DNA from: Mytilus edulis
Taxonomy: Eukaryota
DNA length: 64,000 nt
Direction of reading: 5' to 3'
NCBI RefSeq assembly: GCF_963676685.1
Contig: NC_092355.1
Location: 36,518,001 to 36,582,000, forward strand
The position numbers and the translations under genes are program-made. Under the pieces are notes generated by a model. It saw only the letters and a program-made list of their open reading frames with translations, ran no database searches and was not told where the DNA came from. Within the stretch, counting starts at the first letter, position 1; the number at the start of each line of letters is the position of its first letter. This document shows positions 1-25,336 of this stretch, in pieces.

Positions 1-1437
1 ATAGACATACAATTTAAACATATTAAACAAACAACAGTTATAAAGAAACGCAATTTTCAAAATAGCTATCATAATCAATGTACAATTAAAAGTTACATAC
101 ACTAAAATGTATTATGTTAGTCATTGAAATTTAATACCAATGCCTTCAGTACATTTAGATCAACACAGCATTGTAAAATGTGATTATATTTCGGATAAAT
201 ATCGTACTGTTGCCCTTACTGCTTCACACGTTTTTGACATAGTCCATCATTCTGAAATGTATAATTATCCCCGTTTTATAAAATGAAATTATGTTGGAAA
301 TATTTCAGTATTACATTTTTTAATCTTAATTCATACTACAAAAATGTATACTATTCGCTTTTTGTTTGATTACGCATGTTAATTACAGCACATACTGTTT
401 ACAAACTTTCAGCAAATACAAAAAATCGTGTGACACGGTTATCAGTATTCGGAGCAAATATTTTCCAGACGATAAATATAACACGTAAAACATTAAAATG
501 CAAATGAACGAAAAAGAAAATGTTTTGTTTTAATTGATATTGTTATTGATAATTCCATGAACCTTGTTAATAATTTTTTTTAAAACATTGTTTACTTTGT
601 ATGTAAAAGCGTTTCACAACGAACGATTACATCTTAGTAATATGATCATAATAAAATTTGTTTGTATTTGAAACAAAACATTTTCGTTGCATATTTAAGG
701 CACTTACCCCATGCAGTTGCCGCACGTTAATCCGCTAAAAAATAATAGAAATCAAAATCAAAATCTAGTGTTATCACGAACTTTAGAATCGATGTTACCT
801 TATTTGTCCAATACGTGTAGACCGTTTTCTAAATTCTTGACAGAAAAAAAATTAATAATAATCAGTTCGGTAAGGGCCATATTTCGCTCCGATTATAAAA
901 TGTAATGTTACAAGATACAACAGGTTTTAAGTTGACTTGAATACACGTGGAAAAGTTAAATAGAAAAGGGGACCATTTTAGGCCCTTATCAAAACTACTC
1001 CTTTGTATTTCCAATTAAGTCACATTGAATCTCACTGACCTTTTATCAAACCGCATATTGGTCCAAATGATCTCAAATATGTTTAGTTTTGCTTTGTGCA
1101 CAATTAGTGATATTTGTGGGAGAAATACATGATTAATCCTATTATATCAGTGATGACCTTTAAAACATTACATTGTATGAAAATTTGTGCACCATATATT
1201 ATCCTTCCTTTCACATTATAATACTCTTTTGTACTTTTAAAATATACTTTTGAATCATAATATGTATCTTACTCTGCAGAAAACACGAATTGACTTGTTG
1301 ATAGCTACCCTGTGTAATTTTTGCTTTTAATTTTCAAATGATTGATCGTATTCACCAAAAGGGCATAACGATAGTATGCAGTAAACATGCAAATGAGAAA
1401 GAAATAAGCTTCCATTGCTATGCGCTCTTAATCTACC
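1..1437 (+). mobile_element. 3' end of a second copy of the Kolobok-like element (truncated by the window edge)
   Basis: Near-identical to 44169-45633 and ends ATCTACC|TTGA. Confidence 0.7.
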
Positions 1438-3219
1438 TTGAGAAATAAGTTAAAATAAGTTAATATGATTTAATGATTAATTTAGACGAATCAATCAATT
1501 GTGTTGCCTCGAGTGCTGGAAAAGGAAAATGAATGCATGTGTAATGTAGAGAAAAACAATATCGAGTCCTATATTGTAGACAATATAGTGATTGATCTTG
1601 TGTATGCATGTCAAGACTAGTTTTAAACTTCAAATATGGTGTCAACTTTATGGTTGTTATGCTAGTGGTCAACATCCAATGAGTAAATAATAATGATTGA
1701 AATACTTAAAAGGGAAAGCAATTTCTTTATTTAACAGTTTTTTCCGTGTATTGCATTGCAGTTAGAATTATAAATATTCCTCTTATTCAAACATGAACTT
1801 GATACTTACTAACTGATAAAAAAAAAGAATTGTTATTTTAGTGTGTTTACCATCACTGGTGAATTTTAAATATTTGTGTATTGCCTTGTCATGAATTGCA
1901 AAAAGGTATTTCACTTTTGATATTAAGGCTATATATAACAGATTATGCTACTTCATGTATTTTCATCTCCTAATTAATAAACTATGCTTGTTAGTTATAA
2001 AGATTCCGAAATATCTTTAATGAAATTCCACCAAAGTTTATATGCAATGCAAATAAATATGAAGTTTTAAAACAATCATTTGTATTGATTTAAATTGACG
2101 ACTGAAATAGCAACATATGTGTCGTTTAAAGAAACACTATTATCAACCAATGACGATAACAATAACGATATTTGTTCTTACAATGCATGTATGCTCGACA
2201 AACACATGTGTTATGCTTCAAATATGGTGTCAATTTTCAGTTGTTTCGTTTATGGTAAACGCCCGATGAGTTAATAAGTTGGCTTGTGGGCTTCATCGGA
2301 ACATTTCTTTCTGTGTGTAACCGTATACACTGTTATAGATAGTGCCTCACAGTTTAAGTAATACCATTATGGCCATATTATACAGTTTATCGGGGATACA
2401 TTGTCTCTTGAAATAGTAATGTTGATGTGTGATAATGATTACGAAATGTCTTAAATACATGTTAAGTTATCTATAATTTAATTTACAAATACTCCTATGC
2501 ATCAAACATCAACTTGCTACTTACAGACTGAAAACAAAGAATTTAAAAGTTGCATTATTCTTTTCACCATCGTTGAATCTTTTTTTATTAAGTTGTGTAT
2601 AGCTATGTCATGAATCGCAAAATAAGTATTGTTTTTTACTTTGCAGCTTTATAGAACAGTTGATGCTTGATTTTTATATTATAATTTTTGATCTTATGTG
2701 TGTTTGACAAAGATATTTGTGATGCTGCCAATAAGTTTTAAATTTTCTGTTCGTTTTGCTCGTGATCAACAGCCGATTAGTCAATAAGAAATCTTTATAT
2801 CTTATAAATTTATTTCTGTATGTAACCGTATTCCATTTTATAAATATTGGTAAAGTAATAACTGAATTGCCATATTATACAGTTTATCGGAAATACATTT
2901 TCTTTTTAAATAGCAATGTTGATGTGTGATAATGAAAACGAAATGTCTTTAATATATACATGTCCAACTATTGATATTTGCATCAAACATATAGAGTTTC
3001 CATGAAGCAGTCGTTGGTGATGTTTGAACTGCAAATTACATGTCTATCAAGTACAACAACACCATATAGAGCCATTTACTCAAAACATCATAAATGTTGC
3101 TCGTAGGTATATTTGACTAAACTGGTTTCAAGCTTCTAGTGTCAATTTGCAGTTCATTTTCCTCGTGGTCAACGGCCAAAAAGAAATGAATAATAATTGC
3201 AATATTAAGAGGGGAAATA

Positions 3220-3460
3220 GTTTTCAAAGGTACCAGGATTATAATTAAGAACACCAGACGCCCATTTCGTCTACATAAGACTTACCAGTGACGCTCATGT
3301 CTAAATATTTATAAAGGTATATAAAAATAGCATTGAGGAACTAACATTCAAAAAAGTTGTGCCAAATACGGCTTAGGTAATCTATTCCTGGGACAAGAAA
3401 ATCTTTAGTTTCACGAAAAAATCTAAGTTTTTTAAACTGGAAATGTATATAAATGACCAA
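3220..3460 (+). mobile_element. Interspersed repeat (CCAGACGC..TTTCGTCTACA..CAGTGACG family); also ~47415-47655, ~36800-36910 (reverse) and ~58545-58690
   Basis: Shared core motif in dispersed copies; it interrupts the tandem-unit consensus here. Confidence 0.65.
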
Positions 3461-6400
3461 ATAGTTATTATGTGTATTGCATTGCAATTCAAATTACAAA
3501 CACTTCTCTACATCAAACATCAACTTGCTACTTACAGACTGAAAAAAAAAATGTTACATTATTCTTTTCACTATCATTGATGATTTTTATAATGTTGTGT
3601 ATAGCAATGTCATGAATCGCTAAATGAGTATTTTTTTTTTACTTTTCAGCTTTATAGAACAGTTGATGCTTGTTTGTTTTAAAGATTCAAAAATGTTGTT
3701 ACTAAACTTCCAACAATTTATACATGCATTTAAATGACTATGATGTGTTGATGTAGCAAATATTTGTGTTGACTTGAATTGACAGCTGGAACATGTGGAA
3801 TAGCAACATATGTGTTGTGTTATGAAAACCCGTAATTAAGCAATGACGTAACACATCCTGATTTTTGATCTGATGTATGCTGGTAAAAGACATTTAAGAT
3901 GCTTCAAATACGTTGTCAATTTTCAGTTCGTTTCGCTAGTGATCAACAGCCGAACAGTACAAAAAAAAGGATTGAGCTCGTTATCAGGGAAATTATTTTC
4001 AGAATTAAACCAATACAATGTTACAGGTATTGCCTAGCATATTACCTAATATTCTTATGATCATATTATACAGTTCATCTTTTTTCTGTTGAACAGTAAT
4101 GTTGATGTGTAATAAGGATTTCGAAAATGTTTGTTATAATTGTCAAACTATTTCTATTGGCATTCAAATAATATGGTGTTTCGATGAATCAGAAATTTGG
4201 GTTGTCTTGACGACTTGAGCAACAACATAAATACATGTGTCATGAGGAGAAAAACAATATTCTATCAATGTATAACATTAGTTTTTTTCCATCATTGATA
4301 TATTTTTTTCATTTTGTGTATTGTAATGTTTTGCATTGCAAATTGAGTCTTTATTTATTTTTCCTTTAAAGCTATATAGAATAATTGATCAGAATTGAAT
4401 CTTCAATTGAATAAGTTACGTTTGTTTGCAATAAAGATTCCGATGTGTTTCTAATGAACTTCAAATAATTTATATATTATGCAATTATCGGAATTAAGTT
4501 TTCTTTTGAAATAGTAATGTTGATGTGTGATCAGGATCAATAAATGTCTGTAAATGTCTATAAGCTATTTCTATGAGCTTTACAAAATGTGGTGTTTTGA
4601 TGAAGCAGTCATTGATGTTACTTTGAAGACTTAAACAGCAACATACATGTGTGTGTAAAGTAGAGAAAATCTATATTAAGATATATACTGCAGACATCAA
4701 GTTTGTGAACTTATGTAAGCTTGACAAGACTGGTGTTATGCTTCAAATATGGTGTCAGTTATTTGTTCATTGTCCTCGCGGTCATCGGCCAATCAGTAAA
4801 TACTAGTTATTGTAATATTTGAAAGGGAAAACAATTTATTGTTCTAACAGCTATTACGTGTATTGCATTGCAGTTTGAATTATAAATACTTCTCTAATCA
4901 AACTTGAACTTGCTACTTACTGACTGAAAAAAAAGAATGTTACATTAGTCTGTTTTCAGCATCATTGATAATTTATAATGTTTATGTATTGCCATGTTAT
5001 GAATTTCAAAATGGATATTAATTTATTTTTCCATCAAAGTTACATGTATATAAAATTATTGATCAGAATTGAATCGTCCATTGAATGAGTTACGCTTGTT
5101 TGCATCAAAGATTTAGATGTGTTTCTAATGAACTTCAAACAATTTATATATTATGCAATTATCGGAATTAAGTTTTCTTCTGAAATAGTAGTTTTGATGT
5201 GTGATCAGGATTAAGAAATGTCTTTAAATGTCTTTAAGCTATTTCTATGAGCTTTACCAAATGTGGTGTTTTGATGAAGCAGTCATTGATGTTGCTTTGA
5301 AGACTTAAACAGCAACATACATGTATGTGTAAAGTAGAGAAATATATATTGAGCTATATACTACAGACATCAAGTTGGTGTTCTTATGTAAGCTTGACAA
5401 TAGTTATTGTTATATTTGAAAGGGAACACAATTTAACAGCTATTATGTGTATTGCATTGCAGTTTGAATTATAAATACTTCTCTAACCAAACTTGGACTT
5501 GCTACTTACGTACTGAAAAACAAACGAATGTTACATTAGTCTTTTTCAGCATCATTGATTTTTTTTATAATTGTTATGTGTTGTAGTGTAATGAATTTCA
5601 AAATGGGTATTAATTTATTTTACCATTGAAGTTATATAGAATAATTGATCAGAATTGAATCGTCCTTTGAATAAGTTACGCTTGTTTGTAGTAAAGAGTC
5701 CGATATGTCTCTAATGAACTTCAAACAATTTATATATTATGCAATTATCGGAATTAAGTTTTCTTTTGAAATAGTAATGTTGATGTGTGATCAGGATTAA
5801 GAAATGTCTGTAAATGTCTACAAGCTATTTCTATGAGCTTTACAAAATGTGGTGTTTTGATGAAGCAGTCATTGATGTTGCTTTGAAGACTTAAACAGCA
5901 ACATACATGTACGTGTAAAGTAGATAAAATCTATATTGAGAAATATACTGCAGACAATAAGTTGGTGTTCTTATGTAAGCTTGACAAGACTGGTTTTATG
6001 CTTCAAATATGGTGTCAGTTATGTGTTTATTGTCCTCGTGGTCATCGGCCAATGATGAAATAATAGTTATTAGAATATTTGAAAGGGAAGACAAGTTCTT
6101 GTTCTAACAGCTATTACGTGTATTGCATTGCAGTTTGAATTATAAATACTTCTCTAATCAAACTTGAACTTGCTACTTACAGACTGAAAAAAAGGAATGT
6201 TCCATTATTCTTTTTTAGCATCATTGATTATTTTATAATTCATATGTAATGCCATGCATGTAATGAATTTCAAAATGGGTCTTAATTTATTTTTCCATTC
6301 AAGCGATATAGAATACTTGATCAGAATTGAATCGTCCATTGAATAAGTTACACTTCTTTGCAGTTAAGATTCCGATATGTCTCTAATGAACTTCAAATAA

Positions 6401-6767
6401 TTTATATATTATGCAATTATCAGATTTAAGTTTTCTTTTGAAATAGTATTGTTGATGTGTGATCAATATTTAGAAATGTCTTTAAATGTCTTTAAGCTAT
6501 TTCTATGAGTTTTACAAAATGTGGTGTTTTGATGAAGCAGTCATTGGTTTTACTTTGAAGACTTAAACAGCAACATACATGTATGTGTAAGGTAGAGAAA
6601 ATATATATTAAGCTATTTACTGCAGACATCAAGTTGTTGTTCTTATGTAAGCTTGACAAGATTGATTTTACGCTTCAAATATGGTGTCAGTTATTTCTTC
6701 ATTTTGCTCATGGTCAACGGCCAATGAGTATATACTAGTTATTGTAATATTTAAAAAGGAAAACAAT

Positions 6768-7318
6768 AATATTTTCTCGCGGTTCGAAGTAAAGCGGGAA
6801 AATATTGTATTGACGTTATGGGTAATATGCGTATGATCCAATCAGAGGGGGGATTTAAATCCGGGTATTATGTATGTTTGATTTGTTTGTCACTTTCTAG
6901 CCGCCGTTCGTATGTGCATGACTTAAACTTAAGTCATAATGTATATATAGTTATATATTTTTGAAGTATTTTATTTTTGTTCAAAATTGTGTGTTCGTCA
7001 TCTCTCTCGTTATATAAGGTAAGGTCTGGCTACCTTTTTCCTGAGATAGGCTTGGCATTGTTGTCGGATACAGGTTTCCATTTTAAAAAAAATGGTTTTT
7101 CCTGGACGGCCTCTAATATCTGTGAGGGAAATGTTTTAGAAAATTTAAGAGAGAGTGTATAGAAGCATTGAGTTGCGACATGTTTATTATTTGTTGTTTG
7201 AAACAATATTGTATGTGTTATAATAAAATTACATCCGGCGTCCATCAAATACGGCGAGCGAGCGGCAAATTGATATTTGCGTTTGTGTTGTTTTATGTAT
7301 AGGCATATATAGTATAGA
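6768..7318 (-). mobile_element. ~550-bp insertion in the tandem array, Helitron-like
   Basis: Interrupts the unit consensus. The minus strand starts a|TCTATACT and has a terminal hairpin AATATTTTCTCGC..GCGGGAAAATATT at 6768-6806; no clean CTRR end. Confidence 0.45.
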
Positions 7319-9053
7319 TAATACTTTGTTATTCTAACAGCTATTACGTGTATTGCATTGCAGTTGAATTACAAATACTTCTCTAATCAAACTTGAACTT
7401 GCTACTTACATACTGAAAAGAAAAAACTAATGTTACATTAGTCTTTTTCAGCATCATTGATTATTTTATAATTTTTATGTATTGCCATGTAATGAATTTA
7501 AAAATGAATATTAATTTATTTTTCCATTCAAGCTATATAGAATATTTGATCAGAATTGAATCTTCCATTGAATAAGTTACGCTTGTTTGTAGTAAAGATT
7601 CCGATGTGTCTCTAATGAACTTCAAACAATTTATATATCGGAATTAAATTTTCTTTTGAAATAGTGATGTTGATGTGTGATCAGGATTATGAAATGTCTT
7701 TGAATGTCTATAAGCTATTTCTATGAGCTTTACAAAATGTGGTGTTTTGATAAAGCAGTCATTGATGTTGCGTTGAAGACTTAAACAGCAGCATACATGT
7801 ATGAGTAAAGTAGAGAAAATCTATATTCAGCTATATACTGCAGAAGTTGGTGTTCTTATGTAAGCTTGACAAGACTGGTTTTATGCTTCAAATATGGTGT
7901 CTGTTATTTGTTCATTGTCCTCGTGGTCATCGGCCAATGAGTAAATAATAGTTATTGTAATATTTAAAAGGGAAAACAATTTCTTGTTCTAACAGCTATT
8001 ACGTGTATTGCATTGCAGTTTGAATTATAAATACTTCTCTTATCAAACTTGAACTTGCTACTTACTTACTGAAAAAAAGGAATGTTACATTAGTCTGTTT
8101 CAGTATCATTTATTATTTTATATTTTTTATGTATTGCTATGTAATGAATTTCAAAATGGGTATTTAATTTTTGACATTGAGCTATATAGCACAGTTTATC
8201 AGAATGGTATATTATATTAAATACGTTATTCATGTTTTTTCGAAAGATTTCGATATGTCTTAAATGAACTTCAAACATATCAGATATGCATCAAAAGAAA
8301 TTTGATGTTCTGATGAAGCAATCATTTGTGTTGGCTTGGATTTCCGGCTGGAAAAACAACATATATTTCGTGTTTAGACGAATGATAATCAACCAATAAC
8401 GATAAACATAATAATTTCTGCTGTTATGTCTCTTTGACAAAGACATAAGTTGCGATTGTTTACATATGGCGTCAATTCTGAGTTCGTTATGCTCGTGGTC
8501 AATGGCTGATTGGTCAATAAGAAGGCTTGAGATCTTTATAGGATAATTTATATCTGTATTTAAATGTATGCAGTGTTAAAGGTATTTTCATTGATAACAT
8601 TATAGCCATATTATACAGTTTGTAAGAATGAAATTTACTTTTGAAATGTTGATGTTATATAAGGATTTCGATATGTTTTTAATAAAAGTCAAGCTTTTTT
8701 CATTTTATTGAAACAATATGATTTCTTGAAGAAGCAGTCATTTGTGTTGCCTTGAAGACTTGAACAGTATCATACATGTATATGTCAATTGGGGAAAAAC
8801 ATATTGAGCCATATACTATTATCATCATAGTTGTTGCTCTTATGTAGGCTTGACAAGACTGTTTTTATGCTTCAAATATGGTGTACATTCTTTGTTTATT
8901 TTCCTTGTGTGCAACGGCTATGGAGTTAATAAGTAGAATTGTAATCCTTCATTTTTAAAAAAGTTCATTTTTTAACCGAACATATAATTTCAGGTATTGC
9001 ATTGCAGTTTAAGTAAGAAATAATTCAACCTTGAACTTGCTACTTACAATCTG

Positions 9054-12000
9054 GCCCCGGCGCCATAAAACTTTTTTTTGCTGCGTAAAAAAATATTCTC
9101 AGAATGAATTATTTTACTCAGCTAAGAATGAGAAATTTTTTATCCGCCATAAAAAAATATTCTCAACGTTGAGAATATTCTCAGCTGAGATTTTTTTTTT
9201 CTCAGCTGAGTATTTTTTTCTCAGTGACGTAAGTGGTAAAATAGTTGTTTGAAAACTAAAACGTATACCAAACTTCTCTAAAACGCAGTTTTATCTCTTA
9301 AGAAATAATGTAAAACATTAAAAGAATCTATGATAGATAAGATGACAAGTAGCATTTAGTAGGCATCTGTAACCACAGTCTTGACAAAAAGTCACAGAAT
9401 ATAAAGTCGGCAAATAATTTGTGTTATTATAAAAAATATAGAACCTAATAGATATTATAAGAGAAAGATCTTGAAATACTTGAGTTATTTACCCGTATCT
9501 TCTTATAAATATGTATATATGTATATATATTTTTTTATATTTCTTTATTTAGATCTATATTTTGTATTTTTTTAAAAGATAAAATGCAATCTTCGTTGAC
9601 GTTTACGTGAAGAGTGCTTTCTTTCACGTCCGCACTTCTATCGAGTATGGCGTGCCAAATAAACATTTTGAAAAGATAATTATTACGGATCAATAACATA
9701 CATTATGTATTCAGACGACATAAGACAACATGTGACAATTTTAAGAGAAACAGAGCTGCTTTTTTCTCACATCTACAATGGAAAAAAAACAACCCAAAAA
9801 AACGACAAACCAAATATGTTTAAATCAATATGAAAGCCAGTAAATAATTTGAATCCGTTTTCAAGATATATGTAACTTTAATAATAATATAAATCTGATA
9901 CAGAATTTAACATGTTTAATACGATTTAACAATTATGCAAGTAGTCATAAAAATTGCTCTGCATAATGAGTTTAATATTATATTGCACAGGAAGAGAAAA
10001 TAAAAAGTACGACGTCGTGTGAGAAGGCATGGCATATATATTTAATGTCCATTACAGTTATTAACAACACCTTGTACAAATATTATTTTCGAAAATAAAA
10101 ACAGTTAAATAAAACAAACAAAACTATCCGATTTACGAGGGTCATGAAAAGGGGAGTAGGGGAAGATGTTCTATTTTTCTCTATTCGGTAAGAAATATTT
10201 TCTGTAAAATTCTGATCGTGCATATGGAAATTTCCTTCTGTATCATGATTTTGACATGATAAATGATTTGTCTGGATCAACGACATATGTATGACAACAA
10301 TACCCCCCCCCCCCGAATCTGTCACCTTACTACTGTACTGCACAAATGATACATTCCTGCATATCAATATTTTAACTAATATCTGTTTAAAACCAAACAA
10401 GGGGGGGGGGGAGGATTTTTTTTACTTTCTTTGTAAAACTTTTGATATCTAAGATAATAAATAGAAGATAGGATGACATAACATGTGGGTATATTTGATT
10501 TATACATGTATTTGGTTTAGTAGATATGAGGTACCGGTACTGCAATCTAATTGATGTACCAGTAGTAAATTGTAAAAATAAATTTAAGAGAGAAAAGACA
10601 TTGATAAGTCCAACTGTCCAAAAATATATAAAAAAATTGCATATCTATCATCTATGTTGGAGCATATATTTGAAATTTATTGGAAGTGAACAAAACACAA
10701 AAAAAAAAAAAAATCGAAAACAATGTAATTATCCGTCCTCGAGTATCAGTCAAACAGCCCTTACCAAAAAATGTTGTATTAAATTGCAATGAATTATGGA
10801 TCTTACAAAACTGGAACATAAGACGTAGTACTGTAAGCATGCTGGCGAACGTGAGCTCAGACTTTTTGACTCTGTATTTCTATTTAAAGTCATAATAAAC
10901 AAGTGACCGGTGAAAAATAATGTTATTCCAATTATTGAACAAATGCATACAAACATCATAAACTAAGTCTTCTGTGCACATTTTATATTTTTTTTCGCAT
11001 AAATTTCGTATAATCGTCAATTTGTTTTTCAATCGGTCAGTGTTGTAAAAATATAGCAGGTAATTAAAGTTCGTGTTTTGAAGCCGAAGTTTAACGATTG
11101 TCACCTGTTTGTCAACAATCCACCAAAAAGCATGGATATTGAGCACGTGTTTAACATGTACAATCAGATAATAGTTTATTTTAAGGACATTCATGCGTAT
11201 TGCGATCACCGGATTTTTACGAGATGGGTCACACGGAGGTCACTTTGCATACGGAAAATATGTCGGGGAATTGCTTCCTGGAAGGAAACAATTAGAATAA
11301 TGTAAACTTCTTCTTAATATGAACAAATTAAAGAATTTTCTTCAGAAAAAAGTATATGTACATAAGTTTTATAACGAAAACTATCCATTGAGTTATAAAA
11401 AACATATGCATTATTTTTTTTTAATTTGAGGTTTCTTATGACTTTAATTACCGTTAGTTGTTCATTTATAAATTTTGAAAAATCTAAAGAAACTGAGATT
11501 TCAACTCGGACAAAGTTGACCTTCGTCTCTTTGCCATATTTCTGATTTGTTGTTTTCAATTTGTTTTCCACTATTGCAGCGATTTTGTCAATGATCATAT
11601 TGGTCTGATCTCTGACACGAACTGTTTTATTATGGGGTAATGTTTGTGTAATTTCTGACACAATGCAGGAGAAGGATGTTATGTTGACTTTGTCTGTAAT
11701 AGTGGACGAAATGATACGTCAAGATTTGTTAACTCCTGATGCAAGATCGTGATTTTTTAGCAAAATACTGATGGTTATGGATGTACAGAAATTGCACTGC
11801 TTACGTACATCAATTGACCAATTCCGATTACGACCAGTTCAATATTTCACTCGTTTTACCTTATTCTTAATTTTTATATAAGAAAATTGTACATTTTAGC
11901 ACCCCATTTTTCAGTCTTTTTTCTCTTTCTTTTTTTTTTTGGCACATTTTTTCTTCGCCTCGTTTATGTGGGTAATTTCTAAGAAAGATCAGATATTCAA

Positions 12001-12629
12001 GCGTCAAGCGTTAAAAGTGAAGAATTATTTACAATGAGAAGCTGTTTAATTGGTCGCTTTTTTTGTAGTATCTTTTAAAATTTGGTAAGATTAATATGGT
12101 ACAACCAACTAACAAAGATGGGGTTATCAACTTACATTCTTAATTTTCATATGCTTTTACAGAATTATGAGACATATTTCAGTCGTTTTACCTTACTCTT
12201 ATTTTTTATGTAAAAAATGCACATTTAAGCACCCCATTAATCAGCTCTTTTAGACAACATTGATTTTGAGTATTCATCCTAAAAAATGTATGAAAAAAAT
12301 ATGTTAAGGAATAAAGATGTATATGTTCCTTTGGATAGAATTTGATTTAAGGTGATAAGTGAAGTTCTTCATTGCAAATTTTAACAAAAACACTATCAAC
12401 ATTTGTAATTTTATATCAAATTTCCTTAAAAAAAAACATTTAAGATTTTTTTTATATACTTAAGTATGGTTTTGGCTATACTTAAATATTTAAGAATATT
12501 CTTAACTTTGAGTAAGAAAATATCTGAGAATTTTTTTATGGCGGTGCATTTTGCTGAGAATAAAAAAATTGAGAAAATTCTCAGGCTGAGTAAAAAAAGT
12601 TTACTCAAATAGTTTTATGGCGCCGGGGC
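9054..12629. mobile_element. Non-autonomous PIF/Harbinger element (3.58 kb)
   Basis: 19-bp TIR GCCCCGGCGCCATAAAACT; 3-bp CTG (CWG) TSD at 9051-9053 and 12630-12632; subterminal CCGCCATAAAAAAAT/TTCTCAG repeats; the empty site caatCTGaaac is visible in the paralog at 51646-51656. Confidence 0.88.
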
Positions 12630-13266
12630 CTGAAACATTAGAATTTTATCATTGTTGATTTAATGATTTATTTTGGTATGCTCGAGGTCAACGGCCGACG
12701 GATAAATTTCAAAACCTGTCAGCTATTCTGTGTACATAGTTATCTATTCTGTGTAAACTAATCATTCAATCTTTCCTAATTCTTTTTAGAAATAAACAGG
12801 TTGATAGGTACTAATGCAGACAAGTAAATGATGATGTCTTTGGGTATGATGCTAAAACTATGCAAAAATTGACAGGTTTGCTATTAGAATATAAATGTAA
12901 AGCAGCATTTGTTTAATATTGTATCTTTCTTTAAAATTATCATCTAAACATTTATTTGCTTTCTTTTTGTTTTAGATGTGAACATCCTTAGTGTATGTAG
13001 GAATTACATACACCGGTAAAAAGCAGGTGTCTGTATATATATAAGAAGTGAAGACATACTACATGTTATTTGACTGTCCTTCACTACTGGTCTAGAGCAG
13101 ATAACAAATGCATAATATTATAACGAAATATGACAATATGACAACTTGCAGCGACAATGATCTATTTAACTATTAAGATGCACATGTATAAGTGAGGTTC
13201 ATATAAAATAGAAACATGGAGTTTACCTGGATGTTCTAATATTCAAGTTGAAATATAAGTACTTAC

Positions 13267-13296
13267 ATGGCGCTGAATGGTTGAATTTCTTCACGC
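13267..13296 (-). CDS. 30-nt phase-2/phase-2 exon (G-REEIQPFSA-I) of B-box gene 1
   Basis: Minus strand catttaag|GCGTGAAGAAATTCAACCATTCAGCGCCAT|gtaagt. Same length, splice sites and open frame in paralog 2 (52320-52349). Confidence 0.65.
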
Positions 13297-14737
13297 CTTA
13301 AATGATACATTATACAATTAAGTGATTTTTCTTTTTTTTTTCTTTACTTATTTAATTATATAAATATATGTATGTGTATTGTATGTAACAAAAAAGAAAG
13401 AAAACGTACTACAATCAATAATATCTAAGAGATTGCAAAATAAAACATAACTAACATGTCATAGATTGTTCAGTTCCGACTCACTAATCTTCTAGAAAAC
13501 TAACACAAAAAATTGAAATCTTAGGTTGTATTAACTCTTAAATACTTGAAGAAAAATATGTTCGAAATTTATCCAAACAAATTAGACCAATACGTCTAAT
13601 GTCTACTTTGCAATTACTTTATAGTTCGATGCTAATTTTATGCGGAAATGCCGACATGTATCTTAAACCGCATTTAATATCCACGAACAAACAGCTGCAG
13701 CAGGTAAGGCCCTAGAAGATTGACAATACAAAATATAAAATTGAGAATGGGAATTGGGAATGTGCCAAAGAGACAACAACCCTACCATAGAGCAGACAAC
13801 AGCAGAAGGTCCCTCTGGTATCTTTCGTGCCTCTTTTTTTTTTAACAAATACGTATTTTCTGAGTCCCAGATGTTCCTCGATTTTCTTTCTTAGACATTA
13901 AGAATCATCTCATTGTCATAGCAACTTTTTTATACATCGAGACTTACAATTGTCACAACGTCGATACCGAATTTGGTGTAACAATTAACATGATTAAAAA
14001 AAAACGAAAGGTTATGTATTTCAAATTAATAACATTGCATGTATCTTTCAATATTTTACGTTATATTGATTGGCGAACAGCAATTTCGTGGCCTTCTGAA
14101 ATTGAATTTTGTTACACAATGACATTTTTCAGTCATGATGACAAGAGGTCCCACAGGTAAATAAATAAAAACTTGATAGAAATCATGTTTTCATGATCCG
14201 TGCTAAAAAATGTAATTATAAGTATTGAATGCTTCTTTTTGTAATTCCATATGGTCGCAAAAGCGAGACCGTGCGCACATTTTTTTCAATGAAGAGCTTC
14301 TGCGCGCTTCATACAAAAACTACTTCGGTCAACGAATTTATACTTCAATGTAATTACAAAAAGAAGCATTTAATTCTGAAATAAATACTGTTCAAACAGT
14401 ACAGCATTTCAAACCTTCATATATATGTTACTTAAATACCTTTACCAATTCTCCTTATACATAAATAAATTGAATGTTTATTTTGTTCTTATTTGAGGAA
14501 TTTCAAGTGTTCAATTCATGTCTTCAACAATCGTACATTCTTAGTAGCATTGGTATTGATATGTATATATAATTTAGTAGGTATGCATATTAAATAGTGA
14601 ATCAATATAATGTACAATATCTAGTCAACTATAGAGATGAATGACTGAATAAAAGAATGTATTTGGTTGTGTGCCAATCTACAATAACTTTAACAGACAT
14701 GTTCACCATAACCCATAGCTAACAACATTATATTGTC

Positions 14738-15757
14738 CTGTCACAAATAAGATTGTTATGCTGAATGTTCTAAACGTTTTGTTTTGACACATCTTTATTC
14801 TATGAAAACTTCAGGATGTTATAGTCTAACTGCTTTATGTTGTGTTTATACATATGTATCTCCAGTCAAAATCATGGTACTTCATGGTATAGTTCATATG
14901 CGTGTCGCCGATCAATTAATACTCTCTTTAAGCATTCATTACGTCTCGTGCAAATGCCTTTAACTGTATGTTCATACACTTAATACATTATGTGCACACA
15001 ATTATTACGTTATGTGCAAACAACTTAAAGGTATTGTGCCAACATCGTTTACGTTATGTGCAAACACCTATTTCGTTATGTGTCAGTTTTCTCGTTTGAA
15101 TTGTTTTACATTGTCTTATCGGGGCCTTTTATATGCGGTATGGGCTTTGCTCATTGTTGAAGGCCGTACGGTGACCTATAGTTGTTAATTTCTGTGTCAT
15201 TTTGGTCTTTTGTGGATAGTTGTCTCATTGGCAATCATACCACATCTTCTTTTGTATACTATTTCATTATGTGCAAACACCTATTACGTTATGTGCCAAT
15301 GACGATTTCATTATGTGCTAACACCTATAACGTTATGTGCAAACACCTATTACGTTATGTATCACACCTATTTCATTATGTGCAAACACCTATTACGTTA
15401 TCTGCAAATACTTATTACATTATGTACAAACACCTATTACGTTATTTGCAAATTCCTATTAAATTATGTCCAAACAGATATTACGTTATATGCAAACACC
15501 AATTACGTTCTGGTAAACGCTGTTTGACACAGATTAGAATAAAAACGCATCAATGATATACGCTTTGAAAATTAAGAAAACTACAAGTTGGAGCTTTCTA
15601 AAAAGTTGTGGCTGCTTCGCTCCATCCTTATTTAAGGTAGTATGTGTGCATCGTTTTTTTGTTGATTTACTATTGGAAATGTGGTATTTTTAGATATTGA
15701 TTGATATAAAAATGTTTAGTTTTAAGGGGAAATTATGTTGTTTACTCTAAGAGTGTG
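14738..15757 (+). repeat. ~1-kb repeat with internal 22-bp minisatellite (ACACCTATTACGTTATGTGCAA)n; inverted partner at 27032-27839
   Basis: CTGTCACAAATAAGATTGTTATGC start; 22-mer array at ~14990-15510, interrupted by another repeat at ~15085-15255. Confidence 0.8.
15085..15255 (+). mobile_element. Interspersed repeat (CTCATTGTTGAAGGCCGTACGGTGACCTATAG family); also ~26810-26940, ~33160-33305, ~55560-55700, and reverse at ~22560-22665 and ~53770-54060
   Basis: Multiple diverged dispersed copies in the window. Confidence 0.65.
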
Positions 15758-17267
15758 ACATTGCGCATTGGTATTCGTGTCTCTTTGCGAATATGGCTGG
15801 TTATTCTTATTTAAGCTCTATTCATTTACAAGACATATCCATGTTCTGCATCCCAATCAAAAGGAAACAAACCAAAGAATTTAATAACATAGATGAGTTT
15901 TTGCTTTGTACATTATTTAATGAAAAACTTTGTTCATTTTGATGCCGATAACGTCATTTTAAGGGTGTCCCGCTGTTACAATTATTTGTGTGCTCGTCTT
16001 TGAAAACCAAGTATGGATCAATTGGATAGTCGAATGTAAAATAATTTTACAACTGTATTGTATACCTATAACGTAAAACGGCGTTATAAACATGTTTTAC
16101 TGTGAGGGAAGAAATATACATTTTTACTGCGAGGGAAGAAAAATCGTCAGAAGAGTTGCGTTGGGATAGGGAAGAGAACAAAAATGTCCCAATACGATGC
16201 TAAACTCGTACACAAACTTTCTGTCTTCGCTTTTATAAGATATAACGGATGAAAATGGATTTTAAAAATATCAGGAAATTTATACATGTTCTAACGAAGC
16301 TATTTGAAGTCATCATTAAGTAATTGCAGTCCTAGTTTTAAAACATCGTCAGTTTTCCCGTGTCCAATAAAATGTCCCGATGGACAAAATGACTCAAAGA
16401 ATAATTCAGAGGCTTTTTTTATAAACGAAATTCTATTATATATCAACTGTTTAAAAACTGTTATTTGATATGAATAGAAAATACATCTATTTTACTTTAC
16501 GATTAATATTATTTATTATTAAATAATACGATTAAAACAGCCCTAATACGGATAAATCGCCATGTGCAATACTGATAACGTTCCACTGTCGATATAAATC
16601 AAGAGCTCATATTGCTTTTCGAACAGGGCCAATACAGGACGTTTACTTCCGGTTTCAATTTTCCAACGCCATTACTTAACTTTGGGGATACATTTGTGTA
16701 ATCATAAAATAAAAAGGTTAAATGATGTGCAATGTTAACTTTTTTAACGTCTTGCAGTCTTGAAACGGAAATAATTCACAGCCTTTTCGAGTACGACTTT
16801 CTATTATTGACACTGCTGCATTTCCGTTAAGGTAAACAATCATCACATTCAAAACGCAGACGATCCAAGACAAAGTAAGAATAGTTAAACTGTCTGATTT
16901 ATTCTTCCCAGTTACTTTATATGTGCTACATAAAATGAATTGACGAGGAATCAGAAATTTCATCTGACAATGTTGACAAGAAATCCATGCATGATGATGG
17001 ACGTAAAAGCGAAAATCAGTGACGAGTTCAGATATGAAATGATTTCTGTATCCTCTTTACGGTAGGTCCTATATTTATTCTTATCGAAAAAATATGAATC
17101 TTACAAATGTGACAGTTCATACAAATTTGTCTTTTGAAATATTGACCGCTGATCACATTATGACACATATCAATGACATACATGTAACTCTGTAAGCTGG
17201 ATTCAAAGCAAGTCAGTATTTAAAAAATCATTGGCCCTGTAAACATACATTGTGAACAGATCATAAA

Positions 17268-17392
17268 TCATGTTATGGAGTGGTATTTGCGAAAAATACC
17301 AGTCAAGGGGCTGTGAATTTCCCTAGCCAACAAGGCGATGGAAATCGGTCCCAAGTTTCGTATTTTTCGCAAATACCACTCCACAACATGAT
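17268..17392. repeat. Imperfect inverted repeat (~32-bp arms)
   Basis: TCATGTTATGGAGTGGTATTTGCGAAAAATAC ... GTATTTTTCGCAAATACCACTCCACAACATGA. Confidence 0.8.
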
Positions 17393-17995
17393 ATATCTGT
17401 TTAATTACACCAAATAGTTAAGGACTAAAATTCTCTGTACAGGTGAAGTTGATTTTTTTCTTTTACTTGTAAGGTGTAATTCATAAACATGTTTATGCAT
17501 AATTTTGAGGATAAATAAGTGGATATTATCATAGAACCGTAGGAATTATGCATGTACTAATACGTGTTAGCTCTCTTTTTTATGTAACGTCACATCCGAA
17601 ACAAATTGGCGGAAATATGCCCGGGAGGGTAAAAAAGGAATATCCAAAATGACAAATAACATTGGTACATGTACATGTATTTGAGGCATATTCACCGGAA
17701 GTGGTGAAAAACAGGCAATTTGGTTTGAAATGAGGAAAAAATGTTAGAATATGCCAAAAATACACTGACTACCAAAGGTTGAACCAATCAAATTCTGGCA
17801 TTCTTATATTATGTGTAATTATGCATGTAATTCAGGATTCATTGCCAGTCCGTATTGGAAATATTGGCCCTATATTCACATCAGTGCCAGTCCGTATTGG
17901 AAATATTGGCCCTATATTCACATTTGATGTATGTAATACAGCATTCAGAACAAGTCTGTATTGAAAACGTTGGATTATTTAATAAAAGTGTTATG

Positions 17996-18125
17996 AACTG
18001 GCTGTTTCTGTATTGGCACTGGTATAGATTCTCGGTCAGCTGTATTGGCCCTCGACCCCGTAGGGTCGAGGGCCAATACAGCTGACCGAGAATCTATACC
18101 AGTGCCAATACAGAAACAGCCAGTT
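17996..18125. repeat. Perfect palindrome with 63-bp arms and a 4-nt loop
   Basis: 17996-18058 is the exact reverse complement of 18063-18125; loop CGTA. Confidence 0.95.
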
Positions 18126-18845
18126 AATAACACTATATTATTTACAGTGCTTACATAGCGCTTATCTAAATAAACATTTACTTTAAGCGCTTTACAGTGC
18201 ATAAAAACAATGATACAAGTACATATATATATATAAATAAACACAATTAACAAAAAATGATATGATATGTACTGTTGTTTGAGGTGCATATAGAAAATTT
18301 TAAACAATCTAAGATGTCCAATGATATGTCCCCATAATCGTAACTTTGCGTTCGCGTTATGATAACGCTAAATTGCATATGACTTTTCATGCATATCTGC
18401 ATTGAATGATTTCATGAAATGATCTGATCTAAAAAAAAACAAAAAAACTTATATATTTCTGAAATATAGATCTGCATTGTATCAAAGATTTAGGATGTCG
18501 AATTATTAAATGCGGATGCATCATAAAACATAATAAAGACAAACTCCGGGGTCATAAAAACGATAAGTTTACATATGATCACTCTCGTTTAAAAAAAAGC
18601 TAGATTTGAAACTGGAAATGCGATTAAAAGAAAGTTCATCGTTTAAATTCCTTATAGTCGGATTATAAACGATTCCAAATCAAACTATATACACACTCCC
18701 TTATGCCTAGCGTTGCTATTAAAAGAATCGAAGCTAAGACTACAAAATCTAATGAGAAAAAAAGTACTTCTTGATCATGTTGATTATGAACATTTCAGTA
18801 AATGTGCAATCTTTTTTTTTTTTTTTTATCTTAGCAACTCATTAA

Positions 18846-21087
18846 AGGTGTAATACCACCAAATCATGGTACGTCACATCCGGTTGCATACGAAAGTAGG
18901 CCTAAAAAAATATTCCCTTGAATTTGACAGTTGTAGAAAATTAACCCTGCATTTCAATGCACTTAAATTTTTCTGAGTCGTAAATATGTATGTTGGATGT
19001 CTGAAAGCATCATTCTTTTTTTATTTGATGGTCTTATAAAATATTTTGGAACGTTAAGGTTACGTAGTTACCAAAGCAGGTAACATGTAAATAACTGTGT
19101 AAAAATTGGGTTGTTTACTTCCGGCGATGATTATTTTCTTATATGCAATGAAATGTAGTGTGAAATTTTCACTGTATCACTGGAAAGGATTAAACTTTAC
19201 ACATGCAAAGTATTTTTTTGGTTGAAATAAAGGTAAATACTGTACAATTTTTTTAAAAGTGCCAATTTAACAAAGACTAATAGGGAAAAATCAATGGTGG
19301 TATTACACCTATTTAGGGAAACTACATATGCACTCGTGACCTTATTGTACTTTCATTTTTAAAAGTTATTAATAAACCAGTTCATACATTGTAAACATGG
19401 ACTATTCGGAATGGATTTAGACACAGAGAGCACGTTCGAGGTAAAATTGCATTGAAATGAGGGTTTACGGGTGTTTTCTAAGTCAAATGAGTGGACAGAC
19501 AAAGCTGTATTTAGTTTACTGTGTTAAATTTTAAATTACCCTGACAGATTTGTTTATACAACATGTGATTGTTTTTATTTCAGTGTTAACCATGTTCTGA
19601 AGAGCATTCTGTTGAAAAATCTCATATGTGAATTGGTCTGCAGATGACACTTCAGCATTAAAGTAAGTATCAACTATCATCATGTTTTTTTGGGTTTTTT
19701 TTGGCCGCAAAAGTTTACAATTTGCCATTGTGCCGTCTACATTTTGCACAGACAATAAATCATCTAAACACTTATTTGCCCTGGATTGATACACATCAGA
19801 ATCCAGTCTCACATACTTAAACTTTATAATTCTTACCAATTATTTTTTGTACCAGCATTCCAAGGGACATAACCCTTTTTAAAAACAATTTGAGGTATTT
19901 TTTTATTACTCTTTCTCCCCATTTTCTAATGTAAAATACAAGAAAGTGGACTCTTTGTGTAAATCTATTAGAAATATACTGTTATGAGTAAATAAAAAGA
20001 CTTTGATACCAGTAACAATAAATGATTGACTGAAAGGGAACCGTTATTTGTCACACTAGGCGAACAGACCAAAAACTTGAGTTACACATAAGGACTTATA
20101 GAAACTTCCATGTAGACTGTTAACATTTATAGAGACAGTTCTTTCAGCTAAAACACTTTAATTATTGATTTAACATTACATTTATTTCATTTTTGTGGGG
20201 AAATAATCACATTTGTTTTAATTTTTAGACAAAAGATATTAAGTTTTGATGAAAAAGGAAGGAAGGAGGGAAAAATGGACCAAAACAGACCAAAACAGAC
20301 CTTCAAATGAACTCTAAAAGGTGCAATAAAATTGTTTATCATCTTAAAGTTGTCTTTTGTATTCTATATAATTGTTTGAATGCATAGATCATGAGTTTAT
20401 GATCAGATATTAGTCAACACTGCATTTTATAATAATACACTGAAATTAGGATTTTTCGAAGAAATTAGACTGAAATTGCCGTAGGATATGGCCTTACATT
20501 ATAGTGATTTTCTCTGAAACTATAGCTCTGACTGAGACAAAACTTGACAGTTATGCTTGAAATAACTTGCAATTGGAGGGGAAAAAATTACATTAAGTTT
20601 ATTTGACATTTAGGTGTTCTTTAGGTGTAATACCACCAAATCATGGTACGTCACATCCGGTTGCATACGAAAGTAGGCCTAAAAAAATATTCCCTTGAAT
20701 TTGACAGTTGTAGAAAATTAACCCTGCATTTCAATGCACTTAAATGTTTCTGAGTCGTAAATATGTATGTTGGATGTCTGAAAGCATCATTCTTTTTTTA
20801 TTTGATGGTCTTATAAAATATTTTGGAACGTTAAGGTTACGTAGTTACCAAAGCAGGTAACATGTAAATAACTGTGTAAAAATTGGGTTGTTTACTTCCG
20901 GCGATGATTATTTTCTTATATGCAATGAAATGTAGTGTGAAATTTTCACTGTATCACTGGAAAGGATTAAACTTTACACATGCAAAGTATTTCTTTGGTT
21001 GAAATAAAGGTAAATACTGTACAATTTTTTTAAAAGTGCCAATTTAACAAAGACTAATAGGGAAAAATCAATGGTGGTATTACACCT
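18846..21087 (-). mobile_element. KolobokP-like element with long terminal direct repeats, internally deleted
   Basis: Two near-identical 465-bp direct repeats (18846-19310 and 20623-21087), each bounded by AGGTGTAATACCACCA..TGGTGGTATTACACCT. TTAA at 18842-18845 and 21090-21093. Minus-strand coding remnant in the interior (MGRKSNKKIPQIVFKKGYVPWNAG..YVRL..LLRP..H..C.GNL.F). Confidence 0.72.
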
Positions 21088-24000
21088 ATTTAAACAAAAC
21101 GTTTTACCCGAGAAATACTCGTATCTCATCAATAGTTCATCTATAAAAGAGAAGATGTGTATTATTTCAAATGGGACAACTCTCCTCCAAAAACAAAAAG
21201 GTCACCTAACGGCCTTTAACAATGAGCAAAGTATAGCTTACGATAATTTGTTTATCTACTGATCTACTGTGAGTAGAACAATCTCTATAAAGTAATATAT
21301 ACCTAGCAACATGTGTGTGAAAAAGATAATAACTTTTAGAAATAATGTGGTAAAATTGAGTTCATTTTCTCAAATAAAATTGCCTTTTATATATGCATGC
21401 GATGAGACTAGTATGCTAAACTTGACTTTTACATTAATCTGAGAGAGAAAGAACGAAAGAAAGAAAGAAAGAGTGTTAGTAGGTGTCCGACAAATATATT
21501 GGATTGCACACAACCATATAGCAGACTTCTGTGTATTCATTTACAGACACTCCAAACTCTTTCGAACAAAGGACCCCTTGCACTGGACTCATCTTCCAAA
21601 TTTCTTTATTTCAATATCTTTTAAAAGTATATACTTTGTGGGTAGTTTATTATTTTTTACATGAATTACTAATTTACAAAAGAAAGAGAGAGAGAACTCA
21701 AATTCTAATAGATAGGCTAAATTCAATCCGCTGTGCAAATGAATTAAAAACTGTTTTTAGAGACAACTTAAGGGAAAACAAAAATGTGGTTTCATATCAC
21801 TGGTTGTCTTTTACACGTTGAATCTATATATGAAATGCACTACATAGGGACCACTTAATGGTCTCATAACACAAGTTTTTGCTAAATGCAGGTGTTTTTT
21901 TTTCAGCAGGTTTAAATGCATAGATTTCAAATTGAGATCAAGTGTTCTTTAGGATGTCGTCATGATGTTAGTCTGTCAGGTAGATATTGGTCTATGTAAA
22001 CCGAGTTTTTCATTCTTGAAATGGCCGTATTCTTTAATGTCAATCATATTATAAAAAAATATGGATCACCTACCCTTGTTTAAGCTTTAGTTTGTGAAAA
22101 AATGTCTGAGGAAAATAAAGCTCGTTAAACATGTTTTCCGAAAACAAAAAACACTACGGAATCACCGTTCTCGTTTTCTTAATAAATCACAAAGTACATC
22201 AAATTATTGTAATTGTCATAGGTCAGATGATTTGGCCGTATGATTGCCAAAGACCATATGACATATAAGTTAGCAGTGAATTTCTAAAGGTCATTGTATG
22301 GTCTTTAACAATGAGCAAAACCTATACAAAATTTGTAAATCAATTTTTGAAATTAATTGCCCAATAAAACAATCCCGATTTAAAAATAGTAATCAATGAA
22401 AACATGTTGTTAAAAGTAAAATATTAGACCCTGACCAATCTTAAAATATTGAAAGTTGACAACGGCAGTATAAGAGCATGTCACAGTATTTCTTTTTCAA
22501 ACTTGATAGATAAACAACTATCCATTCAAATCACAATTTGTAAAAGTAAACAAGTATATTTCTAAGTACGGCCTTCAACACGGAGACTAGACTCACATTG
22601 AACAGCAAGCTATAAAGGGTCCCAAAATGACTAGTGTAAAGCAATTCAAACAGGAAAACCAACTGCTGATGCACAATTTACAAAGTTTTTCGTTAGGGAT
22701 TTTATATTAAAAAAAATACAATGTTAACACTATCCTTACAATCGTAATTGATGTTATGATTGTGGACTTATGTGAGAATTACAGTGTAATTGATAAAATA
22801 AATAATATGAATTATAATACTACTAGACTTTAAAAAAAAAGAATGCTACATGTTAAAAACAAAATGCAACCGCATTTCTTTACTGTTCTCTTTCATCTCC
22901 ATCAACTGGGTCATTGGATAGGTCGCCATAACTTGCATACATATTTATTCCATATGGTTTTTGAAGGCGCCGAATAAACCTTCTCAATTATAGACTTTTG
23001 TCGATGTCAGTACGTTGTGCCTGTTAAGACTATATTGACCGAGGAAGAAGATATTTTCCCGCTAACTTTTATCTTGTACTTTTTTAAATTAACAGGAAGT
23101 TTTGGCAAAATTAGGTCCCGAGCAACCCCCCCCCCCCTTTTCTTAATCAAATTGCATATAAAAACAAAAAATGTAGCTCTACCTTTTTAAAAATTCTGGT
23201 TCCGCCATTTTAGTAAACTGGGAGTTAGCTGGTAAATGTGTTTATGGAGCTCACACGGATGAACAAGAGGGTTCCGAAAATTTAAGAAAATTTCAAAAGT
23301 ATAACAAGTGAACATTCTTAACTTTTAATCAGTAACATGAAATTGACAGAAGAATTTAAGCTTTCACTTTCGTATTAAAATCTGTCCTAGTTTTTTTTTT
23401 TCGTTATATAGGTGTTTTTTTTTTAAAGAATTTTGCTTAAAAATGTTACGTCGATCTCAATGCGAACAAGAATTCATCAATATAAGAGGGATTCCGCACT
23501 TTGAGGATACTTTGGATTGAATCATATGTACTACATGCCTATCTTGCTGTTAATATATATTGTTCACGCTTTAACGGCAGCCGTGAAAAGAGGGAACGAT
23601 ATTTCTAAAAATGGCAATATTTGTCAAAACAATGTATATTTTAGAATGATAACATATAGATCCAATAGAATATATTTGTATGACATTTTGATATTTCTAG
23701 AGATAAGATTTCTCAGATGTCCAGCAAATCCCTTTTATGAACATTTAGCATAATTGTGTATTTAGCTATATTTATTGAACCATTCGCGTTCATAACTAAG
23801 AGCATCAAAGTTAACAGTAATACCGTATCCCGAAATAATATACATTGAATTTATGACTCAACCATTCGGAAAATAAGTATATGTTTCTCATTGATCATGT
23901 TGATGCGACGATATTCGTTGAAATTTTAAACAAAAAGATAAATTCATATCAACAACTGTGGAATGCTAAATTGATTATAAATATGATATATACATGTATA

Positions 24001-24660
24001 TATATATATATAATGTATGTACTTTGTCGGAAAACATTAAATTTATTTGTACGAGCTTTAGAAACAGGACTAAAAGTGAGGCATGCCGATATGTCTCCTG
24101 TTTCGCAGCGACTACAAATACATTTTAGATTTCCAACAATGTACATGTACTGTTTTTATCCTGTAATTCACCCTTCGAAATTGAGCATAAATCGTTTAAA
24201 TCCAATTCATTGTATCTGGTGTTTTTTTTTTTTAAATGAAACGCGGACCACGAAGAGGACCCAAAAATGAACTGTTACACAGAAAGAAATTTCCATATTA
24301 CCAATTGCTCAACATGGAAGCGGGTAACTGGAGACTTTATTTACAAATAATCAAAAAAATATCTGTATCATTCTTGATGACAGGTTTTGGATACGACTCA
24401 CAGTTACTAGGCCAAAAACAGATAAATCGAAGTCATTACCTAGAGTTTGCGGGCTTTAATTGCCAGTATGGCCAGTGAATGTGACCCAAAGCTGATCAAG
24501 CTTTTATTTAGAAGGAATATGTGTATGCGTCCTTTTTGTGGATTACAGGATAAATGCAGTTTTTAATATGTCAAAAAAGTTTTAAGAGAAAATGCAACTT
24601 TTTGATTTACCCTCTACCTGTCTTGTACATTTTAATCAATGAAAAAAAAAATCGGACCAA

Positions 24661-25174: not shown

Positions 25175-25336
25175 TTGAGGTAGAGCCAACTTTCCCTAAT
25201 ATTTATGTCACAGAAGGGCCAGTTTAATATGTGCCGAACGAATAGAATTTATGATAAAGACAAGAAATACAAATATTTTTATGTCAATATCTCGATTTTT
25301 ATATAATATGATATGTCAGGAACATAGTTGATTACC

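Follow-up and report, generated by a model that had tools for sequence, protein, structure and literature searches.

Organisation of the locus

The window analysed here is a stretch of 64,000 nucleotides (nt) of the Mytilus edulis contig NC_092355.1 (C12 in the following), and the genome that was searched is the 1.37-Gb assembly. Two genes of a B-box/coiled-coil family, termed A and B, lie on the minus strand of the window, and downstream of each there is an array of units of about 650 bp. The original prediction took this apparent satellite for a tandem array of 3-nt microexons with which a TRIM-like gene builds its C terminus, one residue per exon. As judged from sequence comparison, we are dealing with a real and unusual array of splice cassettes that is linked to a gene, and the ~650-bp unit is not an ordinary satellite.

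The pattern CAG-NNN-GTAAGT (CAGNNNGTAAGT) is found 16 times in the window, as opposed to 0.31 matches expected, and the highest number seen among 100 shuffled sequences was 2. The predicted distribution, nine cassettes in array A and seven in array B, all on the minus strand and none on the plus strand, was reproduced, and the triplets read at the nine sites of array A agree with those given originally. The cassettes are spaced by 586-720 nt or by multiples of this distance, and the units constitute a head-to-tail family of direct repeats in which higher-order repeats can be seen. On the minus strand nearly every unit has the same layout, i.e. a branch-point-like CTAAT, approximately 15 nt, a run of T residues, CAG, exactly 3 nt, and GTAAGTAGCAAGTT. 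The spacer between AG and GT is 3 nt long at every site, and the arrangement of CTAAT, T-run, YAG, 3 nt and GTRAGT is present in 63 of the 67 homologous sites. Arrays A and B are recent duplicates, since window positions 1-6288 and 44169-50482 form a segmental duplicate of 97.5% identity; the number of cassettes in the two copies is not the same. The coordinates of the features are given in Table 1.

Table 1. Features of genes A and B, their cassette arrays and the inserted elements (window coordinates; slashes mark splice junctions).
Feature	Position	Strand	Description
Array A	1804..9053	-	9 cassettes YAG/NNN/GTAAGT
Array A sites in transcript order	9042, 8060, 7404, 6175, 5504, 4915, 3530, 2519, 1804	-	ATT, TAA, TAT, TCT, TAC, TCA, TCT, TCT, TTA
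Array B	46000..51652	-	7 cassettes: ATT, TGA, TAC, TCA, TCT, TCT, TTA
Array B site starts	46000, 46715, 47725, 49111, 49701, 50373, 51641	-	
Gene A exon 1	30447..31213	-	two B-boxes and coiled coil; 100% to XP_071142871.1 (P0083) residues 1-255
Gene A exon 2	29603..29671	-	69 nt, phase 2 to 2, encodes (S)NCAPVLEKKEQRHGYLYRCSGCG, donor GG/GTAAGT; 100% to P0083 residues 256-279
Gene A exon 3	13267-13296 (13263..13296 with stop)	-	30 nt, G CGT GAA GAA ATT CAA CCA TTC AGC GCC AT, then G TAA
Native branch point and acceptor of gene A first cassette	12630..12643	-	TTCTAATGTTTCAG; homologous to gene B 51653-51666
Candidate terminal exon, gene A	224..251	-	TTTCAG/A ATG ATG GAC TAT GTC AAA AAC GTG TGA; entered in phase 2
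Gene B exon 1	56307..57074	-	B-box/coiled coil; frameshift within B-box 2 (two overlapping open reading frames, 56307-57095)
Gene B exon 2	54409..54476	-	frameshifted by a 1-nt deletion
Gene B exon 3	52320-52349 (52316..52349 with stop)	-	REKIQPFGKM; stop inside AT/GTAAGT
Candidate terminal exon, gene B	44392..44419	-	identical to that of gene A
~13-kb insertion in intron 2 of gene A	14728..27849	.	~800-nt inverted ends of 22-nt tandem repeats, 84-89% complementary
3.6-kb element	9054..12629	.	terminal inverted repeats GCCCCGGCGCCATAAAAC; 3-bp CAG target duplication

The model of gene A is fixed by the protein P0083, i.e. the 289-residue isoform X2 of M. edulis, because this protein matches the window at 100%. 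The 30-nt exon ending in CCATTCAGCGCCAT that had been noticed originally proved to be real. It is, however, exon 3 and thereby the last coding exon of the annotated protein: its tail, REEIQPFSAM, is the C terminus of P0083, and the stop (ATG TAA) overlaps a consensus donor, AT/GTAAGT, so that the TAA lies inside the proposed splice site. Exon 2 intervenes between this exon and the B-box exon. The B-box exon ends, as described, in an open phase-2 donor (..ATT AG/GTAAAT, 30447/30446), but it does not adjoin array A: owing to the 13-kb and the 3.6-kb insertions, the two lie 21 kb apart. The larger insertion is probably a large DNA transposon, and the smaller one interrupts gene A precisely at the acceptor of its first cassette. 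Intron 2 also contains, just below exon 2, a 169-bp tandem repeat (28568-29303, 4 copies, 89% identity) that is followed by a (GGAC)n-like microsatellite.

Gene B, with its two frameshifted exons, is a pseudogene. The first cassette of array B is located 660 nt past exon 3 of this gene. Between genes A and B there are fragments of a Mutator-like transposase (34873-35370, 38977-39510 and 42192-43033, plus strand; Pfam PF20700, E=2e-48) as well as open reading frames that match exonuclease (RNase_T) and PML_C; the fragments in 34873-43033 are probably parts of mobile elements.

Genomic distribution of the unit

The sequences compared were those of the window and of 30 array loci, while a second gene cluster (see below) and most of the terminal exons are known by coordinates and short pattern matches. 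The unit has more than 167 matches in the genome, all of them on the minus strand of C12 and, with the exception of one at 41.51 Mb, all between 35.92 and 36.72 Mb. The closest relatives of the B-box exon (63-100% amino-acid identity) are found in the same interval in about 18 copies, again all on the minus strand, and each array is situated 4-7 kb downstream of a B-box exon on the same strand. The 20-mer YAGNNNGTAAGTAGCAAGTT, searched with at most one mismatch, gave 117 matches on the gene strand as compared to 8 on the opposite strand; the control values were 11 and 9. Exact matches of this 20-mer are confined to three places, i.e. the cluster of the window, a B-box cluster at 41.09-41.57 Mb and a pseudogene on contig C8.

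The predicted linkage of the array to a B-box gene, on the same strand and downstream, thus holds across the C12 clusters, and the search for a genome-wide satellite unlinked to B-box genes showed instead that the unit is confined to a single B-box family. An ordinary satellite can therefore be rejected: the units are indeed arranged head to tail, but they keep to a single strand and always stand behind a B-box exon. A transposable element or introner is rejected as well, as there are no copies outside the gene family and the ends of the unit, GTAAGT.. and ..TTTCAG, are not inverted repeats.

The genes of the second cluster (41.09-41.57 Mb), whose exon 1 has ~68% amino-acid identity to that of gene A, have one cassette each. 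In all 11 listed genes of this cluster the sequence TTCTTTTTCAG/TNN/GTAAGTAGCAAG is intact, and six different NN dinucleotides occur. On C8 (76735589-76751015, plus strand) we found a transposed copy of the B-box exon that contains stop codons; two cassettes lie ~5.5 kb and a terminal-exon region ~15 kb downstream of it on the same strand.

As regards the origin of the unit, no homology to exon 2 or to introns 1 and 2 was found. Resemblance to the unit is limited to the sequence that follows the first cassette and to some 100 nt immediately ahead of it. A weak CNTCN resemblance might suggest that the units hold coding remnants similar to exon 3 or to an 'exon 4'; we treated it as a chance similarity.

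Conservation of the splice signals and variability of the triplet

The variability along the unit was investigated by aligning 29 non-redundant units and counting the parsimony changes of each column on their tree. Since these units had been picked by their junctions, the calculation was repeated with 32 units that were anchored in their middle.

The average over the 677 columns of the first alignment was 1.5 changes per column. The two highest values, 10-14 changes, belong to positions 2 and 3 of the triplet (denoted NN), and the next highest value is 8. The same two columns are at the top in the middle-anchored units, with 16 and 15 changes. The opposite is seen on both sides of the triplet. 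The donor and the 54 nt that follow accumulated 35 changes as compared to 86 expected (P=3e-10), fewer than in any window of 54 nt from the central part of the unit; the corresponding figures for the middle-anchored units are 29 and 86 (P=8e-13). The 50 nt before the acceptor show 47-53 changes as compared to 80 expected (P=5e-5 for 47, the value of the 29 units). The most conserved 12-mer of the unit is GTAAGTAGCAAG. Moreover, 31 of the 32 middle-anchored units keep the pattern YAG-3nt-GTRAGT; the departures are mostly TAG in place of CAG and GTGAGT in place of GTAAGT, i.e. changes that still meet the splice consensus. In other words, there is an excess conservation of the splice signals over the background of the unit, as had been anticipated, and it extends to some 50 nt of flanking sequence on either side of a hypervariable triplet.

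No internal block stands out in the conservation profile of the unit, and Rfam gave no match in the units at E<=1. A host array of small nucleolar RNAs (snoRNA) or microRNAs (miRNA), in which one would look for the small RNA inside the intron, is thus unlikely and was rejected: Rfam is empty, and only the flanks of the cassettes are conserved.

Units with flank differences below 2% share the same NN dinucleotides, and at flank differences of 6-12% NN is already random (0.7-0.8 differences per site). Decay of CpG covers a part of the C-to-T changes at position 3 of the triplet, but not the four-base spread at position 2, and neither CpG decay nor unequal crossing-over accounts for the pattern. 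On the evidence of the alignments, it would fit either a diversifying selection on the coded dinucleotide or an unknown mutational process that is specific to the junction.

Reading frame and terminal exon

Each of the exons 1, 2 and 3 ends in phase 2. The candidate terminal exon, the sequence of which opens with AATGATGG, is entered in this phase as well. It is found 6-13 kb from the donor of exon 3, and the array lies in between. The arrays are consequently framed by a donor and an acceptor that are both of phase 2, so any number of 3-nt inclusions would remain in frame. Read in phase 2, the triplets of all 11 arrays are free of stops; in phase 0, TGA and TAA codons are numerous. If the donor of a cassette is left unspliced, phase 2 reads xxT NNG TAA, i.e. 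an immediate stop, which is the layout of exon 3 as well.

A terminal exon is modelled in a related species. The Mytilus trossulus isoform X2 (P0032, 291 residues) ends at exon 3 (..FEKIKPLSAT), whereas X1 (P0111, 331 residues) continues past it with ..SAT/YSKTYMKCDICNG/RMMKRFKRVKENLSPKYNQDVSNAVLK (RMMKRF..AVLK). In at least one paralogue the exon-3 donor that overlaps the stop is therefore modelled as an alternative. A 40-residue query from P0111 was used to search the M. edulis genome for this tail, and its end was matched at three places (C12:36177765, 36587087 and 36349370), all on the gene strand and just below arrays. Five more arrays, and the C8 copy, likewise have DNA resembling the terminal region below them, and homologues of the terminal exon stand downstream of at least 10 arrays. 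A pattern search for the terminal exon of other paralogues matched in genes A and B only, the pattern being too specific.

The protein family and its isoforms

The open reading frame of gene A (30443-31234, minus strand, 263 residues) matches, within residues 13-102, both Pfam zf-B_box (52 bits) and an ANCHR-like B-box, and its match to TRIM_CC (residues 124-226) reaches 22.7 bits, below the cut-off of 30. No RING finger was found by Pfam in this reading frame. The designation 'TRIM-like' is thus adequate for the B-boxes and the weak coiled coil, but this is not a full TRIM protein. The relatives of gene A are Mytilus proteins of 256-290 residues, named 'TRIM71-like' or 'TIF1-beta-like' in RefSeq.

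The tail of the family (proteins P0001-P0127) is a small CxxCG knuckle, ..H-G-x-L-Y-R-C-x-x-C-G/x-E-x-I-x-P-x-x-x-X. In some paralogues (P0011, P0069, P0111) there is a second knuckle exon after exon 3, which suggests that the 3' end is modular, with a stop within the donor at each step. One M. edulis gene has the RefSeq isoforms X1, X2 and X3, which draw on different copies of exon 1. We also note that two other gene models (P0096 and P0082) fuse the B-box family to a gene with a TSP1 domain.

Interpretation of the cassette array

The explanation that we tentatively prefer, and to which we give somewhat less than even odds, is that the splice cassettes are real and go back to one alternative microexon of 3 nt, located between exon 3 and the terminal exon, which was amplified into arrays in the cluster of the window, its sites being used sequentially. 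The anatomy, the gene linkage, the strand, the conservation of the splice signals with their flanks and the hypervariability of NN are shown by the sequences; that the cassettes are spliced and that the triplets reach the messenger RNA (mRNA) and are translated is a hypothesis drawn from them. The unit would then have arisen by tandem amplification, within the gene, of one old splice cassette of the Mytilus B-box/coiled-coil/zinc-knuckle family. The order of the gene would be exon 1, the 69-nt exon 2, the 30-nt exon 3, then one cassette (in the 41-Mb cluster) or 3-12 cassettes (in the cluster of the window), and finally the terminal exon. Where the donor of exon 3 is not used, translation stops at once, and the annotated 289-residue form shows this outcome. 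Where it is used, the transcript would run through the array, as the isoform pair of M. trossulus leads us to think. The sites of the cassettes would have to be used one after the other, because an exon of 3 nt cannot hold complexes on both sides, and a sequential use as in recursive splicing would place an ordered subset of in-frame NN+T triplets, none of them a stop, before the terminal exon. Alternatively, translation may end at the TAA inside the unspliced donor of a cassette. In this form, the originally proposed C terminus that grows by one residue per exon is a plausible hypothesis. The further step, a combinatorial generator of peptide tails in which ordered subsets of NN+T codons are expressed and the two free bases are under diversifying selection, possibly in an immune context, appears unlikely on the same sequence features.

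Several observations weigh against the preferred explanation. The RefSeq and other gene models of four species (M. edulis, M. trossulus, M. galloprovincialis and M. californianus) terminate at or before the exon-3 stop, and residues coded by the triplets are absent from all of them; pipelines for gene models, however, cannot place 3-nt exons. In a tail-only search the long tail was confined to a single protein cluster in 5.8 billion. The terminal exon of genes A and B is degenerate as compared to the M. trossulus tail RMMKRFKRVKENLSPKYNQDVSNAVLK, with an early TGA and frameshifts further on, and of the three terminal exons that are intact, two stand behind defective copies of exon 1. In gene A the cassette at 9042 is separated by the 3.6-kb transposon from its native acceptor. 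Gene B has retained exon 3, the terminal exon and an array of 7 cassettes despite the frameshifts in its first two exons. Since all cassettes descend from one, no significance attaches to the uniform 3-nt spacing as such. Finally, the NN dinucleotides are identical between the 97.5% duplicates, which means that their diversity is not very recent.

Some of these facts are equally what one would see in a neutral tandem repeat, i.e. if a segment of the last intron or of the 3' flank that happened to contain one cassette had been amplified by unequal crossing-over, the motif being kept by descent and concerted evolution and the array being unused. We consider this somewhat unlikely. Young units that are 7-12% apart and form higher-order repeats speak for it, as do the arrays behind pseudogenes (gene B and the B-box copies at 36188052 and 36600467), the transposon in the first acceptor of gene A, the unequal copy number of the near-identical duplicates, and annotated proteins that end ahead of the array. 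What a neutral repeat leaves unexplained is the distribution of the changes: there are 2-3 times fewer of them in the ~50 nt that flank the cassette than in the rest of the unit, and ~8-10 times more at NN. It also leaves unexplained the perfect 30-nt frame about a variable NN in the single-copy cassettes of the 41-Mb cluster.

The cassettes could also be competent for splicing and yet have a noncoding role, either as waypoints for a stepwise, recursive-like splicing of the long 3' intron or as strong U1 sites that curb premature polyadenylation in AT-rich sequence. Transcription could then proceed as far as the terminal exon or the following paralogue, and triplets that stay in the transcript would be a by-product. 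We regard this as rather improbable. With their succession of pyrimidine tract, CAG and GTAAGT the cassettes match the ratchet points of Drosophila (bioRxiv 10.1101/006163), and each unit contains AATAAA or ATTAAA. Furthermore, the M. edulis isoform X3 joins an exon 1 at C12:36664577-36665344 to exons 2-3 of gene A. The intron implied by this would span ~117 kb, with gene B and three arrays inside it, which suggests transcription across the arrays, although such chimeric RefSeq isoforms may stem from reads mis-assigned among paralogues. Against a noncoding role it can be said that the 3-nt spacer leaves a triplet in the mRNA, so that the frame matters regardless, that a function restricted to U1 needs no acceptor, and that hypervariability of NN is not predicted.

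Least probable of the alternatives, and in our view very unlikely, is a set of alternative last micro-exons, in which the donor of exon 3 would be joined to the acceptor of one cassette, the donor of this cassette would remain unspliced to give (AT+T)(NNG)(TAA), and polyadenylation would take place within the unit. Every cassette does read xxT NNG TAA in phase 2, exon 3 is laid out in the same way (NNG TAA GT), and there is an AATAAA in each unit. Moreover, no other position of the tail varies as much as the last residue of the short isoform, which is coded by NN+G before TAAGT (3.0 bits; 16 paralogues show 9 different residues, and 15 of these paralogues fit NNG); relaxed constraint alone could produce this variability. 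On the other hand, tails of the type ..SA-I-X are not among the retrieved proteins, neither the conserved GT after the TAA nor the ~50 conserved nt downstream are needed, and cassettes of the TTA and TAG type would give stops.

Comparison with known systems

The nearest parallel in exon size to the amplified microexon that we propose is exon 4d of honeybee elavl2, a 3-nt exon that is spliced sequentially (PMC8553928). In both cases 3 nt stand between a consensus AG and GT, add one in-frame residue, and form an exon on which both splicing complexes cannot fit. The honeybee exon is, however, a single exon with RNA proof, while the mussel cassettes come in 1-12 tandem copies with introns that are 650-nt repeats, are hypervariable, and are known from sequence. 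In the layout of the signals, the cassettes resemble the zero-nucleotide recursive sites, or ratchet points, in the long introns of Drosophila (Duff et al. 2015; bioRxiv 10.1101/006163): both consist of a pyrimidine tract, CAG and GTAAGT, both are conserved and oriented like the gene, and the mussel sites, too, would be intronic. In a ratchet point the acceptor abuts the donor and no nucleotide of the site remains in the mRNA, and ratchet points occur singly; the two sites of a mussel cassette are 3 nt apart, its triplet would be retained, and the cassettes are tandemly amplified. A third parallel is provided by the exon arrays of Dscam and protocadherin genes and their human counterparts (PMC9741552), where units of exon plus intron likewise stand in tandem and the exon diverges faster than the splice signals. 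The exons of those arrays measure tens to hundreds of nt, code for segments of domains and are picked singly; the mussel 'exon' is one codon.

The micro-exon genes of Schistosoma are fast-evolving families with runs of symmetric tiny exons, the skipping of which varies the protein in frame. Their exons are 6-36 nt long, make up most of the coding sequence of a secreted protein and are not copies of one unit, while the mussel cassettes are 3 nt long and concern the C-terminal tail only; with 255 of the 289 codons of gene A in one exon, a gene of the Schistosoma type was rejected. Host arrays of snoRNAs and miRNAs (of the SNHG14 and MEG8 type) repeat a tiny exon, conserved at its splice sites only, together with an intron that carries a conserved small RNA; the mussel units differ from them in having neither an Rfam match nor a conserved block in mid-unit.

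Microexons in Mytilus are not described in the literature that we searched. The array can be regarded as a variant of microexons, recursive splice sites and tandem exon arrays. Should the cassettes be spliced, this would be the first case known to us of exons of one codon that have been both tandemly multiplied and diversified. It would mark an extreme of exon size, and one would have to ask how a spliceosome copes with a chain of 3-nt exons. As annotation and spliced aligners are blind to 3-nt exons, similar architectures could hide elsewhere. Even if the triplets are not translated, there is purifying selection on paired splice signals and a faster-than-background change between them in about 30 paralogous genes. 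The locus can thus be looked upon as a natural experiment on the evolution of splice sites, on alternative termination by a stop inside a donor, and on the expansion of introns by tandem duplication.

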